Shown here: positions 21,944 to 28,519 of the stretch, in pieces
Numbering within the stretch: position 1 is the first letter of the stretch
How the letters are laid out: every line of letters starts with the position of its first letter
DNA from: Blastocladiella emersonii ATCC 22665
Lineage: Eukaryota > Fungi > Blastocladiomycota
NCBI GenBank assembly: GCA_025594325.1
Contig: JANHCV010000004.1
Coordinates: 434,001-498,000 of the forward strand
Length of the DNA: 64,000 bases
Direction: 5' to 3'
The notes under the pieces: model-generated
Told to the model about the DNA's origin: nothing
Database searches by the model: none
The model's input: only the letters and a program-made list of their open reading frames with translations
Position numbers and translations under genes: made by a program

Positions 21944-22779
21944 AACCACCGCCGCCGTTGATGCTCTTGTTCAACCAGTTGAGAGAAAAAGGGCGTGAAA
22001 AGCAGCTGCCGGCGGCGTTCTAAACACCAAAAAAGTGAATGCGCGGTTGTTGGATCCGCAATCTGCACGGCCGTGGCGAGTCTCCTATCACAGCGACTCG
22101 GGCGAGGATCGGAGGCCAGTTGATCCCGTCAGAATCGAACCTCCCGCCGGAGTGCCGTTCATGTCATGTCAGGGCTTCCTCGACCGCTTGAGTGGCATCC
22201 ACTTCGAGGACACTCGCTCGACCTCGGTCAAGGACGCATTCCCGCCGGCCTCCGGCGACACGTATCAATCAGGGCAGGCACGCCTTGTTCGACGCGGTAA
22301 GGGAGGGCAAGATACAAGCTGAATGAGAAATCACGCCTGAATGGAGTGAGCTGCGTGGGAGATCATGGCCGCGAAAGGTGTGGTAGGCACGACGGATCTA
22401 TTTGAATGCTCGCAGCTGCAGCGCTTAACGGTCAGTGACCACTCGGGTCATAACATTAGCAACGTAGATTTGAACTCGTCCCCAAGTTGTACTCCCTGCC
22501 GCGGACCATAGCCAATGCTGCGACATGCCGCGCACGCAGGCACGAGCACGAGCGCAGATGGCGTTGCCACCCATCGGCCACCCACCGCCGCGCAAGTCCG
22601 CACATCAAAGCCGAAAAACTCGTCAGTGATGGGCGACACGAGCGAAGAGAAGGGCACCTAGACGTGGGCAGTGGCCCAGCAACGTCGTAGAATGGATATA
22701 ACTGTTATCTTCCTCGTCCAAATCGGTCGTTTGTGCGATAAACTAGCAGGTGACGGTCGGCGACCGGCCGCGGCAGTGC

Positions 22780-22872
22780 AATCAGGAATCAAAGGTTGAA
22801 ATCAACGAAGGCGAGAGACCCGCCGGGTCCTCTGGTTCATCTGAAACACGGATATGAATTGAAGTCATCAGG
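22780..22872 (-). ncRNA. snR18: U18/snR18-like box C/D snoRNA
   Basis: Box C TGATGA (22870-22865); guide TCCGTGTTT (22852-22844), complementary to the conserved LSU rRNA segment UUGAAACACGGA; D' CAGA; C' TTGATT (22805-22800); box D CTGA (22785-22782). This is the same element order as recalled U18 sequences. Confidence 0.75.
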
Positions 22873-23055
22873 TACGCCGCAGCGCGGTCGAGCCCAGAAA
22901 GTAGCAGGTGAAGAAATGCGGGTGTGCTGCCTCAGTTGGTAGTGCATGTTTGTTTGTAATCAAAGTATTCAGTGATCTTGGTGAAACAGTATAATCAGCG
23001 GCCAGCAGGACATAAACCGATTAGCAATGTAGGGTTACAAGGGAAAGGGAAGAAA

Positions 23056-23617
23056 GTTCGCTCAGACATCCAAGGAAGGTCACGATGTGCCATCAGCGAG
23101 CCGGTCGCAGCCTCCCCACGAGCAGCGCCAGTCAACCTTCCCCCACCTCGACCCGAACACACCTTGCCCGACCCAAGCGTTCCTGTTTCTCCCAGCGCTT
23201 TCGCCCACAACGACCCCAGAGACGCGGACGAGACTGACTTCACAAACGGCAGCACGACCAGGACCGGACCCCGTGAAGGGAACAGTACTTGAGACCGATC
23301 GCGCTGTACGCTATGAACATCAGGCCACCACACGCCGACAAGGCCGAAGGGAACGCCGGGCAGGAACGAGTAGGGCGAACAAGGGGATGGAGAGGGGATG
23401 AGGGCATGGTCGAGAGGTACCAGTGTGGACGGCAGGCACTCCTGCCACACGACGCATGTTCGGCAGAATGGGTTTAGCGTACTGGTGCGTGTGGGTGCCG
23501 CTGCCGATCCGAGACCGTCACGGCAGGGCGCGGAGAGCCCGCCTGGAGGCCGGGACACAACAGAGGACTCTACGGTGGAAACTGCGAAGTTGATATGGAA
23601 ACTTCATCAGCGCGAAC
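23056..23617 (-). ncRNA. snR128: U14/snR128 box C/D snoRNA, greatly expanded (562 nt)
   Basis: Terminal stem GTTCGC/GCGAAC; box C TGATGA (23609-23604); domain A TTCGCAGTTTCCACCGTAG (23588-23570); Y-domain-like AGTACGCTAAACCCAT (23483-23468); domain B ACCTTCCTTGGATGT (23080-23066), complementary to 18S ACAUCCAAGGAAGG; box D CTGA (23065-23062). Confidence 0.9.
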
Positions 23618-23828
23618 GGGTGGGCGTCGCCTCCTCGAGCAAGAGAGGGTAGGGAAGGGAGAGGAGGGGTGGGAGTGGTCGTCGAGGCGCGGTTGTCGAG
23701 TTGTCGATGGCGAGGGCGAGGCGAGCGTGCTGAGAGACGACGGGCAGAATGCAGCAACGGTGGTGAGGGTGGAGTAGGCTGCATGGAGCAGCGTGCCGAG
23801 CAAGAGATGGGAGTGGGCCGAGTGATCG

Positions 23829-23835
23829 TTTTATG
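23829..23835 (-). promoter_or_regulatory. TATA-like element (CATAAAA) of the putative snoRNA host transcript
   Basis: AT-rich box about 210 nt upstream of U14 box C and just downstream of the RanBPM 3' end. Confidence 0.35.
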
Positions 23836-24062
23836 GCGGCGGCCGAGCGCACTCATCGACCGCGAAGTGGAACGTGTTTGGGCCGTGTCAAGTGACCGCA
23901 GCTGACCCGTCGCGAGGTGGATTTTCCTTGAGCTTCGCTCACTTTCACCTCACCACTTCGCATCGCAGCTGAGCCACCACCTCCACCGACGACCACCTCG
24001 AAAGAAGGAAACTGGGGTGATATAGTTACTCTCGCACGCACAAAACAAACTGCTTTCCGCCG

Positions 24063-25964
24063 TTACAGCCCGCCAAACACGCGGGCCGCGACATTGACGA
24101 GGGGCGCGTCCGCGATCCCGCGGGCCGCGAGGACGGCCGCGGCGGCGCGTGTCTGGCACGCGACGGCCTCGAGCGCGGGACGGGCGGGGCGGCCGAGGGC
24201 GCCGACCTGGATGGCGCCGTTGACGCGTTCGGCGAGGAGCGCGCGCTGGGCGGGGTCGAGGAGCGGGGCGACGACGGGGACGGTGCGCGGGTCGGCGTAC
24301 GCGACGAGCGAGAAGACGGCGAGCAGGCGCGGCTGGACGAGTTCGGCGGGGAGCGCGGTCGGCGAGGTGGTGTCGTGGCCGTACGGCGCGAGGGTGCGGC
24401 GGCCGTAGTCGAGGGCGGCGAGGAGCGGGGCCGGTGGTGCGCCCGTGGCGGAGGCGGCGTCGCGCTCGGCGAGCGACGCGGCGACGAGCTCGACAAACTT
24501 TTGGCACTGCAGGGCGAAGCGGGTTTCCGGGTGGCGGTCGAGGAAGGCCGGGTACGCGGCGTCGATGGCGGCGAGCGCGCGGTCCATGTCGCCGTCGAGG
24601 ATGGCCTCGCGGATCGCGGCGCGCTGCTCCATTTCGCGCAGCTGCTCGCGCACGTCGGCCGCGTCCGATGCCGCCGCCGCAGCGGACGCGCCGTCCACGT
24701 CCATGGCGTCGCCGCCGTGGCTCGCACCAGCAGCGGAAGATGGAGATTCAGGGGCCGAGGCGGACGAGGCGGCAATCTTCTGCCGCTGGCGCAGGAGGGC
24801 GGCGGCCGTCTTCTTGTACCCGTGGTGGACGAGGTAGCCGAGGACGAGGTCGGTGAGCTGGCGGACCGAGGGGTCGGGGACGGCGGGGTTGGGGCGCACG
24901 ATCTTGTCCCATGCGGCGGCGCGCAGGTCGGCGGCGTAGGCGGCAATGTCGAACTTGAAGGGAGCATGCCCAAAGTTGGCGGCGACGACCTCGCCCGGGG
25001 TGCGCATGCCGACGGCCGGGTAGAGGGGCTTGGAGATGGGGGCCGAGTTGCCCGAGGCGGGGACGGGGGTGGTCGGGAAGGGGAGGTTGGTGAAGGCGGT
25101 GCCGAGGTTGACGCCGTTCTTGGTGAAGAAGGCGGAGCGCGCCGCAAAGTTGATACCGCAACCGATCACGTCGCCGGTGGTGAAGGTCGGGCCGTAGGCC
25201 TTGCCCGAGCCCGAGGACTGGAAGATGTTGCCGTCGTCACCGTGGTAGCCCCACGAGTGCTGCTCCCAGCCGGGCAGGCGGTTGAGGGCGACGCCCTGGG
25301 CGCAGAAGCCGACGCTGATGTACCCCTCGCGGCCCTTGGAGACGATCTGGACCTCGTAGTAGTAGATGCCGGTGGCCATGGGGATCGGGTAGTTTGCGCG
25401 GACGGCGGCGGCGTCCGTGTCGCTGCGGCCGGGCCCCGTGTAGTCGACGCGCTGGTGGGCGTCCTTGAGCTCGAGCAGGCCGCACTTGTCGCGCTGGTTC
25501 CACGCGCTCGGCAGCTGGATGTGCAGGCCGTCGGCGGCGGGCAGCGCGGCGCCCATGACGGGGTTGTAGGTGGGCGCGCCGAACGCGGCGCTCGCGGGGC
25601 TGAGCGGGCCGGGTGCCGCGGCGGAGAGCGGGCTCGCGAGGGCGGAAACGGCGGCGGCAGTCGCGCTCAGCGTCATGGGGCTCGTCGAGGTGGCGGGCGA
25701 GACGCCGGCGGCGAAGGCGGCGGCCGAGGTGGCGGGGTCGGCGAGCTCGAGGCGCGGGGCAATGGCGAGGGTGCGCAGGTAGGCGGGCAGGTTGCGGTTG
25801 ATGCCCGCGTCGCCCACGACACCGTCCTCGTCGGCGCCGGCCGCACTGGCAGTGCCGGGCGCGCCGGCAAGCGCAGCGGGGCCCGTGGCGAGGTGCAGGG
25901 CGGCGGCGAACGGCTGCTTGACGGGAGCGGCGAGCGGGGGCGCGCTCGCGAACTGGCCGTCCAT
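24063..25964 (-). CDS. RANBP9: RanBPM/RanBP9-10 (Gid1-like) with SPRY-LisH-CTLH-CRA domains, 633 aa, intronless
   Basis: SPRY (AAVRANYPIP...YYYEVQI...GFC...LPGWEQHSWGYHGDDG...YGPTFTTGDVIGCG), LisH (LVLGYLVHHGYKKTA), CTLH (RAAIREAILDGDMDRAL...FALQCQKFVEL) and CRA (FSLVAYADP). Confidence 0.95.
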   Translation of the reverse strand: MDGQFASAPPLAAPVKQPFAAALHLATGPAALAGAPGTASAAGADEDGVVGDAGINRNLPAYLRTLAIAPRLELADPATSAAAFAAGVSPATSTSPMTLSATAAAVSALASPLSAAAPGPLSPASAAFGAPTYNPVMGAALPAADGLHIQLPSAWNQRDKCGLLELKDAHQRVDYTGPGRSDTDAAAVRANYPIPMATGIYYYEVQIVSKGREGYISVGFCAQGVALNRLPGWEQHSWGYHGDDGNIFQSSGSGKAYGPTFTTGDVIGCGINFAARSAFFTKNGVNLGTAFTNLPFPTTPVPASGNSAPISKPLYPAVGMRTPGEVVAANFGHAPFKFDIAAYAADLRAAAWDKIVRPNPAVPDPSVRQLTDLVLGYLVHHGYKKTAAALLRQRQKIAASSASAPESPSSAAGASHGGDAMDVDGASAAAAASDAADVREQLREMEQRAAIREAILDGDMDRALAAIDAAYPAFLDRHPETRFALQCQKFVELVAASLAERDAASATGAPPAPLLAALDYGRRTLAPYGHDTTSPTALPAELVQPRLLAVFSLVAYADPRTVPVVAPLLDPAQRALLAERVNGAIQVGALGRPARPALEAVACQTRAAAAVLAARGIADAPLVNVAARVFGGL

Positions 25965-26569
25965 GGTTGCTTCTGGTTGGATGTGTTACGTTGCTTGCTT
26001 CGTGGTCGAGTGTTGGGGAGAGGAAAGGAGAGGAGAGGGAGCGCGGACCGAACGCGTCGGGCGGCGGGGCGGGCCGCGGCTCCCACGCGTCCGCCCGCCG
26101 CTCTCGCCCACGCGCGACCACGCGACCCGACGCGCAACTTGTCCCCTCCCCTCGCCCCTCGTCTCTCTCCCCTCCCTCTCTCTCGCTGAGATCCGCGACT
26201 CGGTGCACCGCCGCCGCTCCACGCATCGACGACCCTCGCGCACGCGCACCCGCCGCGCCGCGCCGCGCCGATCTCGCCACGCTGGCGCCCGGCCGCCGAC
26301 CCCCACCTGCCGCTCGCGGCCCGACCCCGCCGCCCACCAAGCGCCCCGCCGCCGACGATCGCGACGAGGAGCCCGCTGCTGCCGCGACCTCCGCGACCGC
26401 GCCCACCGAGCCCGCGCGCAAGCGCCGCCGCAAGGAGAAGAAGCTGCGCCAGAAGCAGTGGCGCGACGACCAGGCCGCCCGCCGCTCTGCTGCTGCCGTC
26501 GAGCCCGCCTCGGCCGATCCACCTACCGCTGCTCCACCCGCACCCGCCGTACCCGCACCCGCGCCCAAG

Positions 26570-28519
26570 ATGAGCTTCGCGTACCGCCGCTTCGGGTCCG
26601 CGCGCCGCGCGCCCGTCGAGGAGTCGACGCCCGAGGAGACGCACCAGCGCCACGAGCAGCTCGCCCGCATCCTGACCGGCGAGCCCGACGCCGCCGCCGC
26701 CGTGCTCGGCCCGTCGTCCGCACCGGCGCTCGGCGGGAACCTCACCGAGGCCGAGCTCGCCGCCGACTTTGACCCCGCCCTGTGCATCGAGTGCCAGGAC
26801 CACCCCGCCGACCTCGTCTGCCACGGCTGCGCCGACGACAAGTACTGCTCCGTCTGCTTCCACGCACAGCACCGCAAGTCGCCCGGCCGCCTCGCCCACA
26901 AGTCGACCCCGATCCACGGCGGTGCTGCGGCCGAGAACGGCGACGCTGCTGCCGCGTCCGCTGCCGCCGCCAACGGCGACGCGATGGCGACCGACTCGCC
27001 CATGGACACGTCGTCGGCCGAGAGCCCGACCGCTGCCCCCGCTCCCGCCGCCGCGCCCGCCGCGCCCGTCGTCGCCAGCCCCTCGGCCACCCACAACGCC
27101 GCCGAGTTCGGCGCCTGGCTCACGGAGCGGTGCCAGTGGATCCCCGTGCGCATGTCGCTGCCCGAGCGCAAGCTGCTGCGCCTGCTCGACGCCGCCCTGC
27201 GCGTCTCCGAGTACACGGACCGCGTCGACATCCTCGCCGCCGGCTCGCGCACCCAGCGCATGGTCACCCAGATCCGCGAGGTGTGTCAGACCCTCGCCGG
27301 CCTCGTCGTCGCCGCCGACTACCAGCTCGGCCAGGAGCTCTTTGCCGACCGCGACTTTGCCGCCAACGCCGCCTGGTACGCCCACGTCTTCGAGCTCGGC
27401 CGCCGCCACAAGATCCTCAACCCCGACAAGATGCGCGCCACCTACGGCAAGCTCATCGTGCTGCTCCAGGACGCGGCCCTCCCCGAGGTCCAGCGCCTGC
27501 TCGGCTTCGACGTGATCGCCCCCGTCAAGACCGTCCACCGCGTCCTGTCGCAGCACGGCGCCCTCCACCTGCTCATGGACCCCATGGTCCTCGACGCCAC
27601 CGCCGAGATCATCTCCGACGGGAAACCGCGCCGCGTCATCGACGCCGAGATCCGCCGCAAGGAGCACGCCGTCGACACCCTCGCCCGCAAGTACGCCACC
27701 CCGTCGCTCACCGCCGACGACCTGCGCTCCGTCCTTTACTCCATCGGCGACCACCACCATTACCTCCATTTTCATCGGGACCCGTGCGACCACCTCCTCA
27801 AGCACCTCAACACCTTCTTTGGCGGCGAGGAGCCCGTCGGGGGCAGTCTGGCGATCCGCGCCGGCAGTTTTGGGGCCCGATTGACCCATTCACACGCCAA
27901 GCAATACGCGTACGTTTCGCAATCACTTGCCTTGTGGCGTGAAATCGAAAACGACATGTTCATGCTCTGGTCGCTCGCCGAGGCCGACCTGCTGTCGAGC
28001 GACGGGTACCGGCTGCGCAACACGGGCCAGGGCCTCAACCGCGTGCAGGCGTGCCCGAACGTCGGCCGCGCCATGCACGCGATCCTGCGTCGCGCGCAGA
28101 CGCGGCTCGGGTCGTGGGTCGGGTCCAGCGTCATCCACCTCGGCGACGAGAACGTGCCCAACGCGCTCATGTTCATCGACAAGTACACGCAGGTGCCGCG
28201 CATCCTGCACCCGGTCCTCAAGGCCGTCGACCGCCTCGAGTCCGAGATCCACGCGCACCCGGCGCTGCGCGAGTTCCTCCGCGCCCAGTACGGCGCCGAC
28301 GACACGGTGCGCCGCGCCCAGTGCGCCATCCTCGAGGACTTCTTCAAGCACGCGTTTGACGGGTCCGGCGCCGACAACTTCAACTCGGCCGGCAGCTGCA
28401 TCGACGGCCGCCTCACCAGCGCGTGGAACTGGTGCTCCGCCATCGAGAAGAAACCCTACTTCCCCATCTTCCTCCTCACGGGCTTCGTCGGGTTCGACGG
28501 CGAGTCGTTTGACGTGTGA
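26570..28519 (+). CDS. B-box zinc finger + UPF0652/DUF2009-like protein; possible non-AUG N-terminal extension from 26282
   Basis: B-box CIECQD...CHGC...YCSVCFHAQH...H, followed by a conserved-looking region (IPVRMSLPERK.LRLLDAALRVSEYTDRVD; ELGRRHKILNPDKMRATYGKL; AFDGSGADNF..AGSCIDGRLTSAWNWCS..EKKPY..IFLLTGFVGFDG). Confidence 0.85.
   Translation: MSFAYRRFGSARRAPVEESTPEETHQRHEQLARILTGEPDAAAAVLGPSSAPALGGNLTEAELAADFDPALCIECQDHPADLVCHGCADDKYCSVCFHAQHRKSPGRLAHKSTPIHGGAAAENGDAAAASAAAANGDAMATDSPMDTSSAESPTAAPAPAAAPAAPVVASPSATHNAAEFGAWLTERCQWIPVRMSLPERKLLRLLDAALRVSEYTDRVDILAAGSRTQRMVTQIREVCQTLAGLVVAADYQLGQELFADRDFAANAAWYAHVFELGRRHKILNPDKMRATYGKLIVLLQDAALPEVQRLLGFDVIAPVKTVHRVLSQHGALHLLMDPMVLDATAEIISDGKPRRVIDAEIRRKEHAVDTLARKYATPSLTADDLRSVLYSIGDHHHYLHFHRDPCDHLLKHLNTFFGGEEPVGGSLAIRAGSFGARLTHSHAKQYAYVSQSLALWREIENDMFMLWSLAEADLLSSDGYRLRNTGQGLNRVQACPNVGRAMHAILRRAQTRLGSWVGSSVIHLGDENVPNALMFIDKYTQVPRILHPVLKAVDRLESEIHAHPALREFLRAQYGADDTVRRAQCAILEDFFKHAFDGSGADNFNSAGSCIDGRLTSAWNWCSAIEKKPYFPIFLLTGFVGFDGESFDV

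Follow-up and report, generated by a model that had tools for sequence, protein, structure and literature searches.

U14 is one of the few small nucleolar RNAs (snoRNAs) that are both essential and universally conserved. It is required for making 18S rRNA and thereby the small ribosomal subunit, and is a stable nucleolar RNA to which fibrillarin, Nop56, Nop58 and Snu13 bind. Its typical length is 80-160 nt (PMC6315972), the Neurospora crassa homologue (CD37) measures 97 nt, and in yeast, N. crassa and plants the gene is clustered with other snoRNA genes (PMC2780460). The U14 of Saccharomyces carries a Y domain (Samarsky et al. 1996, as cited in PMC6315972), and lethal mutations in this domain are suppressed by the helicase Dbp4 (PMC3950691). 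In a fungal survey, 90% of the C/D snoRNAs were 80-135 nt long and the longest family reached 200-300 nt (PMC5824354). Large size differences are described for other RNAs, such as the H/ACA snoRNA snR86, which is about 1 kb in Saccharomycetes and about 180 nt in N. crassa (PMC5824354), and fungal U3, which can carry large inserts; the U3 genes of Dikarya can also contain introns with the consensus GTRWGT / RCTRAY / YAG (PMC5832005). In the literature searched, no modification-guide-type box C/D snoRNA longer than about 300 nt was found, and neither an enlarged U14 nor any snoRNA from blastoclads was described.

Here we describe a U14 gene of 562 nt in a 64,000-nt stretch of the genome of Blastocladiella emersonii (the window, whose numbering is used throughout), together with its orthologues in other Blastocladiomycota; in this and related zoosporic fungi the gene is four to six times as long as usual. 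The best reading of the locus is that of a genuine U14 whose internal hairpin, located between boxes D' and C', appears to have grown from about 23 nt to 215-530 nt.

Results

The 562-nt locus carries all the elements of U14

From terminal stem to terminal stem the gene occupies positions 23056-23617 on the minus strand. The 5' strand of the terminal stem, GUUCGC (23612-23617), pairs at six of six positions with GCGAAC at the other end (23056-23061), as had been claimed in an earlier reading of this DNA from its letters only (the sequence-only reading). Box C (UGAUGA, 23604-23609) follows the stem after a 2-nt spacer and precedes domain A, the 18S-complementary processing element, which is a 14-mer (TTCGCAGTTTCCAC, RNA form UUCGCAGUUUCCAC; 23575-23588). 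Next come expansion segment 1 (ES1, 23484-23574), which comprises the 91 nt between domain A and a Y-type motif with a GAACCCA-type loop (AGTACGCTAAACCCA, RNA form AGUACGCUAAACCCA; 23469-23483), and expansion segment 2 (ES2, 23096-23468), which comprises the 373 nt from this motif to box C' (UGAUG, 23091-23095). Domain B starts 11 nt 3' of box C' and runs directly into box D (CCTTCCTTGGATGTCTGA, 23062-23079, with the box D CUGA at 23065-23062); it consists of the methylation guide CCTTCCTTGGATGT (RNA form CCUUCCUUGGAUGU), which is followed by CTGA. All the hallmarks that the sequence-only reading had listed were therefore found on the minus strand in the canonical order of stem, box C, domain A, Y-type motif, box C', domain B and box D.

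A search of the 64-kb window for box C with domain A gave a single match (0.00 in 100 shuffles), and domain B with box D was likewise matched once, even with 3 mismatches allowed, where 0.02 matches were expected from shuffles. Logan contigs from two DNA runs of one sample covered positions 22600-24100 with 0 differences and 0 joints and gave no sign of misassembly, with the reservation that the sampled runs may themselves be the source of the assembly.

At the gathering threshold Rfam gave no match in the 64-kb window, which bears out the expectation that standard covariance searches could miss this RNA. With permissive thresholds the SNORD14 model (RF00016, 111 positions) recognised both halves of the gene, one match in each, at 21.3 and 16.3 bits (the gathering score is 64). 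At E<=1 nothing was found in the U14 loci of Catenaria or Allomyces described below. All the sequence features of U14 are present, and only the Rfam score and the length fall outside the family; both deviations are attributable to the insert, and the low score to the insert rather than the core. That 23056-23617 on the minus strand is a genuine U14 (SNORD14) gene we regard as close to certain.

The two guide domains match their expected targets in 18S rRNA

Pairing of the guides was evaluated on the SSU sequence of another fungus (metagenome locus L123), which served as a proxy for the host's own 18S. On this proxy, domain A formed a duplex with SSU positions ~77-94 and domain B a 14-bp duplex with positions 411-425, with energies of -19.7 and -27.4 kcal/mol, respectively. 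The target of domain B is the 18S-Cm411 site that has been assigned to the U14 homologue of N. crassa (PMC2780460), and the domain A 14-mer was found to be exact in Catenaria and Allomyces too. We read the locus as what appears to be a working U14 with the usual dual role in processing or chaperoning and in guiding methylation. The terminal stem would bring boxes C and D together, domain A would pair with the 5' region of 18S rRNA in a processing or chaperone function, and domain B, lying 5' of box D, would direct the 2'-O-methylation of the conserved cytidine in 18S rRNA (Cm411 by N. crassa numbering).

U14 is the first gene of a snoRNA cluster

Two further box C/D snoRNA genes lie downstream on the same strand. 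A SNORD33-like gene (22927-23005, minus; Rfam 32.5 bits, E 0.0022) starts 50 nt after U14, and a U18-like (SNORD18-like) gene (22806-22876, minus; Rfam 20.5 bits, E 1.1) is the third member. The SNORD33-like gene was found 43-52 nt after U14 in all the blastoclad orthologues (Catenaria and Allomyces), and the guide of the U18-like gene (AUCCGUGUUUCA) is also present in Catenaria, about 70 nt after the SNORD33-like gene. The order U14, SNORD33-like, U18-like is common to the window (22806-23005, minus) and Catenaria (L001:12880-13100). The Allomyces loci keep U14 and the SNORD33-like gene, and the U18 guide 12-mer was not found in them. A crude box C/D scan upstream of U14 gave no further snoRNAs.

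Both neighbours are of ordinary size (79 nt for the SNORD33-like and 71 nt for the U18-like gene), which indicated that the expansion is specific to U14. Given that the spacers among the three snoRNAs are only 50 nt each, they are too short for an arrangement of one snoRNA per intron and a polycistronic precursor is indicated; the cluster would be transcribed as a single precursor and trimmed by nucleases.

The expanded layout is shared by three blastoclad lineages

Directly upstream of U14 lies a SPRY-LisH-CTLH gene of the RanBP9 type (24063-25964, minus), and the cluster begins 446 nt downstream of it. Its protein is most similar to those of Catenaria anguillulae (55% identity) and Allomyces javanicus (47%), with other zoosporic fungi next, which places the host in the Blastocladiomycota without a closer relative in the database. 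U14 orthologues were sought at the loci of the SPRY orthologues. In C. anguillulae the SPRY gene is followed after 477 nt by a U14 gene of 620 nt (L001:12208-12827) in the same orientation. In A. javanicus, A. macrogynus and A. arbusculus the U14 genes are 304, 294 and 294 nt long and lie near the SPRY gene on the opposite strand, with the same order of elements (L002:13640-13943, L005:14038-14331 and L006:14069-14362). At the SPRY loci of Paraphysoderma (L003) and Sorochytrium (L004) no U14 was found within 10 kb.

All five species have box C, an exact domain A, the motif AGUAC[A/G]C..AACCCA, domain B, and a UGAUG situated 11-12 nt 5' of it. Measured from domain A to the end of domain B, the genes span 525 nt in Blastocladiella, 586 nt in Catenaria and 255-265 nt in Allomyces. 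The split layout thus seen here recurs in related zoosporic fungi. An equal architecture at syntenic loci excludes a chance juxtaposition of U14-like motifs as well as an insertion private to Blastocladiella, and the comparison shows that the expansion is common to the three blastoclad lineages sampled (Blastocladiella, Catenaria and Allomyces).

Several observations were made on the surroundings of these genes. The position of U14 directly downstream of the SPRY gene is common to the window and Catenaria, and the head-to-head pair formed by the SPRY-LisH-CTLH gene and a B-box/DUF2009 gene (24063-28519 in the window) is kept in Allomyces (L002:7106-11674 and L005:7479-12057). A DOPA-dioxygenase gene, which was checked for synteny, is absent from the 64-kb window. 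About 500-650 nt upstream of the Allomyces U14 (L002:14440-14600) there is a block with 80-94% identity among the three species in a spacer of otherwise 40-50%; this could be another non-coding RNA, or a promoter that U14 shares with the divergently oriented PI4-kinase gene. In each of the three U14 genes of Allomyces, CUUA stands in place of the box D CUGA, directly before the terminal stem (L002:13640-13660, L005:14038-14058 and L006:14069-14089, minus). A change of G to U at this position would be expected to impair the kink-turn, but it is fixed in all three.

The central domain is bounded by covarying helices

As the sequence-only reading had stated, the Y-type motif is flanked by extra sequence on either side, with 91 nt before it (ES1) and 389 nt between it and domain B (ES2 counted as far as domain B). 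ES1 is steady in length (91 nt in Blastocladiella, 92 nt in Catenaria and 92-97 nt in Allomyces) and its sequence is barely alignable, and ES2 measured to domain B varies from 389 nt here to 448 nt in Catenaria and 115-122 nt in Allomyces. The similarity of ES1 and ES2 to their Catenaria counterparts was weak and above that of shuffles (z of 2.2 and 3.55, respectively). The first half of ES2 is pyrimidine-rich and the second half purine-rich, and the purine profiles of Blastocladiella and Catenaria were correlated (r 0.68) above every circular shift. A whole-gene MAFFT alignment across the lineages misaligns the middle. No second copy of the central domain was found in the 64-kb window; it is not a repeat, and a transposon insert as the source of the expansion was rejected, there being no other copy in the window.

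Two helices frame this domain. The terminal stem covaries, with GUUCGC/GCGAAC in Blastocladiella and UUUCGC/GCGAAA in Catenaria (G-C to U-A), and in Allomyces it is extended by two pairs to 8 bp (GUGUUCGC/GCGAACAC). The argument of the sequence-only reading that the complementary ends belong to one unit is strengthened by this. A closing helix of 5 bp is formed by GAGUC (23566-23570, minus), 4 nt after domain A, and GGCUC (23098-23102, minus), 2 nt before box C', and encloses 463 nt. Catenaria has GGACC/GGUCC at exactly equal offsets, with three of the five pairs changed and pairing kept (A-U to G-C, G-C to A-U and U·G to C-G), and Allomyces has CACC/GGUG at nearly the same place. The covariation comes from three independent lineages and rests on few pairs.

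In the Allomyces trio, three-way identity was 88% within the U14 block and about 40-50% in the flanks, with the edges exactly at the terminal stems and with variable patches of only 5-15 nt inside the block. An RNAalifold consensus of the trio contained 4 pairs with compensatory double changes, 2 of them in an ES2 hairpin. This pattern of conservation shows the whole block of about 300 nt to be under purifying selection, and in Allomyces, at least, the ~300 nt behave as one selected RNA that has no intron-sized segment running free.

The internal folding of the domain gave a different picture from its borders. GC-rich hairpins, which the sequence-only reading had pointed out, are present in the minimum-free-energy fold, but the central domain folds no better than composition-matched shuffles (the z-scores were -1.6 to -2.5 for Blastocladiella, about 0 for Catenaria and +1.9 for Allomyces), and the hairpins are therefore not evidence in themselves. 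No robust fold of ES1 common to the lineages was obtained, the consensus of ES1 and the Y region being weak (-10.7 kcal/mol). Local stems closing the Y-type loop can be drawn for each species and differ among species; the AGTACT (23291-23286) that had been proposed as the Y stem partner has no conserved counterpart in the orthologues and was given up.

The borders of the domain bear on whether the locus could hold two independent RNAs, a 5' one with box C and domain A and a 3' one with a mini box C', domain B and box D, in separate snoRNPs. A box C'-like UGAUG is present 11-12 nt 5' of domain B in all lineages, and the UCGC before it could pair with the GCGA after box D, as such a division would have it. 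The 3' unit would be only about 45 nt, however, and the 5' unit would have no box D. Covariation of the outer terminal stem extends over 300-620 nt, and the order of box C, domain A, hairpin, box C', domain B and box D is the normal one in compact U14 genes. To our knowledge, 45 nt is also below the size of the known eukaryotic C/D snoRNAs. We consider two separate RNAs very improbable.

We have equally little confidence that the locus is a U14 pseudogene disrupted by inserted DNA, with a working compact U14 elsewhere in the genome. In favour of this reading, the genome search covered 64 kb and the Rfam score is below threshold. An expanded layout that is found at syntenic loci of three lineages, where the boxes are intact, the guides exact and the stems covarying, speaks against it, as do the purifying selection in Allomyces and the insert being unrepeated in the window. 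Furthermore, in the full Logan contig sets of two DNA runs of one sample only the locus itself matched at 80% likeness and there were no partial matches; this last point is weak, as short guide-only matches escape such a search.

A spliced insert is an unlikely alternative to one long RNA

With a genuine U14, the insert might still be removed partly or wholly, by splicing of a spliceosomal intron, as occurs in U3 genes of yeast, or by excision of an internal spacer, leaving a shorter mature U14 or one of two base-paired pieces. An intron-like stretch of 110 nt was found within ES2 (23420-23311, minus), starting with GUACCU and having CUGAU 9 nt before UAG. Its length falls within the range of 55-333 nt of B. 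emersonii introns (PMC2773782), the GTACCT donor is also used in one Catenaria gene model, and fungal U3 shows that snoRNA genes can contain introns (PMC5832005). An intron pattern this good was, however, obtained in 28% of dinucleotide shuffles, and the candidate has no counterpart in Catenaria or Allomyces. The GUACCU donor is 2 positions off the fungal GTRWGT consensus, and Blastocladiomycota are without U3 introns (PMC5832005). Without the 110 nt, the RNA would still measure about 450 nt. The Allomyces genes are conserved over their whole 294-304 nt, without an intron-sized variable block or a usable AG, and the insert is enclosed by covarying helices. Being at chance level and absent from both relatives, the stretch at 23420-23311 is probably not an intron. 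Removal of the insert in one of these ways is possible and, in our judgement, rather unlikely.

The single-intron gene models of Catenaria (L001:1265-2070 and L001:10001-11731) have the donors GTACCT, GTACGC and GTATGC, and donors in blastoclads may follow the fungal GTRWGT consensus less strictly. The U14 Y-type motif, too, begins with GTACGC. An ORF inside the Catenaria U14 was used as a protein-search query aimed at transcriptome contigs and gave no match.

The full 562 nt are, on balance, likely to be kept in the mature U14 RNA.

Compact U14 genes have the same internal hairpin in a short form

A scan of metagenomes with the domain-B/box-D 18-mer gave 187 matches at 120 loci, and a clade-specific 26-mer gave no match. 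Where box C and domain A were recognisable, the stretch reaching from domain A to box D measured 50-97 nt in about 165 genes and 189 nt in two (L053 and L123), compared with 525 nt in Blastocladiella; other longer values were mis-pairings with neighbouring tandem copies. Many of the compact genes have the sequence CCAC-AGA-CAGCC-[GAAUGAACCCAAU]-GGCUG-UG-UGAUG, that is, a hairpin with a 5-bp stem starting 3 nt after domain A, a 13-nt loop containing GAACCCA, and box C' 2 nt after the stem. Tandem compact U14 genes (e.g. L008:700-800, L022, L065 and L101) carry UGAACCCAAU in the loop of this hairpin.

Since the closing helix, the loop motif and the geometry of box C' of the blastoclad genes match those of the compact genes, the central domain appears to be the ordinary U14 internal hairpin, with the base of the stem and the loop motif kept and 215-530 nt added. 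The motif, which the sequence-only reading had described as fungal Y-domain-like, is conserved in the relatives; it is not specific to fungi, being present in compact, tandemly arrayed metagenome U14 genes. Given its occurrence in compact non-yeast genes, the GAACCCA motif looks ancestral and older than the yeasts.

The two genes with a 189-nt span (L053:2500-2741 and L123:1020-1253) are of intermediate size, roughly 225 nt, and have a Y-type loop motif (CGAACCCAU) and AGAUGA as box C. These sizes indicated that expansion of the hairpin is not confined to Blastocladiomycota. The L123 gene (L123:1034-1253, about 220 nt, Rfam 49 bits) is situated in an rDNA intergenic spacer, with the 3' end of the LSU (1-601), U14, a 5S gene (1856-1975) and the SSU (from 3811) in this order on one strand. 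Assemblies frequently lack rDNA spacers, and, if the source of L123 is a basidiomycete-like fungus, such a location could account for the reported absence of U14 from Basidiomycota (PMC5824354).

Discussion

In the proposed mature RNA, insertions of 91 nt before and about 370 nt after the Y-type motif would lengthen the D'-C' linker to about 470 nt, and the whole 562 nt would stay as one mature snoRNA. The expansion would project from the snoRNP core as a tolerated, fast-evolving arm, similar to the expansion segments of rRNA or the enlarged yeast snRNAs, and the arm may provide extra contacts with proteins or pre-rRNA around the Y-type loop. For Blastocladiomycota in general, we see about even chances that U14 is a single mature box C/D snoRNA of ~300-620 nt whose central arm has clade-specific functions (contacts with pre-rRNA or a helicase) and is not ballast.

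If a length of 300-620 nt proves to be conserved for U14 throughout a fungal phylum, this would mean that a box C/D snoRNP can accommodate about 0.5 kb of linker between its two halves. The origin of the GAACCCA "Y" element would also move to well before the yeasts, and blastoclads would offer a natural system for studying its function. A practical warning follows from the fact that the blastoclad U14 genes are wholly missed by covariance-model annotation: given that such models miss an expanded U14, absences of U14 reported for fungal clades (e.g. Basidiomycota, PMC5824354) may be failures of detection.

The locus can be compared with four known systems. Intron-containing U3 genes of the Dikarya are similar in that the gene is longer than the expected RNA and has GT...AG-like sequence inside, but the sole candidate here is at chance level and unconserved. 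With U14/SNORD14 as known from yeast (snR128), N. crassa (CD37), plants and vertebrates, the gene shares the boxes, domains A and B, the hairpin, the terminal stem, the dual purpose and the clustering; it differs in its 562 nt, in being recognised in two pieces (21 and 16 bits) and in the 525-nt span between domain A and box D. As in the yeast Y domain, an additional element with a loop of the GAACCCA type is placed between domains A and B, and we take the motif AGUACGC..AACCCA to resemble the sequence of the yeast Y stem-loop. The yeast element is a hairpin of about 30 nt, whereas the motif described here sits in a domain of about 470 nt and its proposed closing partner is unconserved. The U1 and U2 snRNAs of S. 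cerevisiae are enlarged as well, and these, snR86 and fungal U3 all resemble the present gene in combining a conserved core with large, fast-evolving and lineage-specific insertions that standard homology searches do not bridge. Those examples, however, come from Saccharomycotina or Dikarya and belong to other RNA classes.
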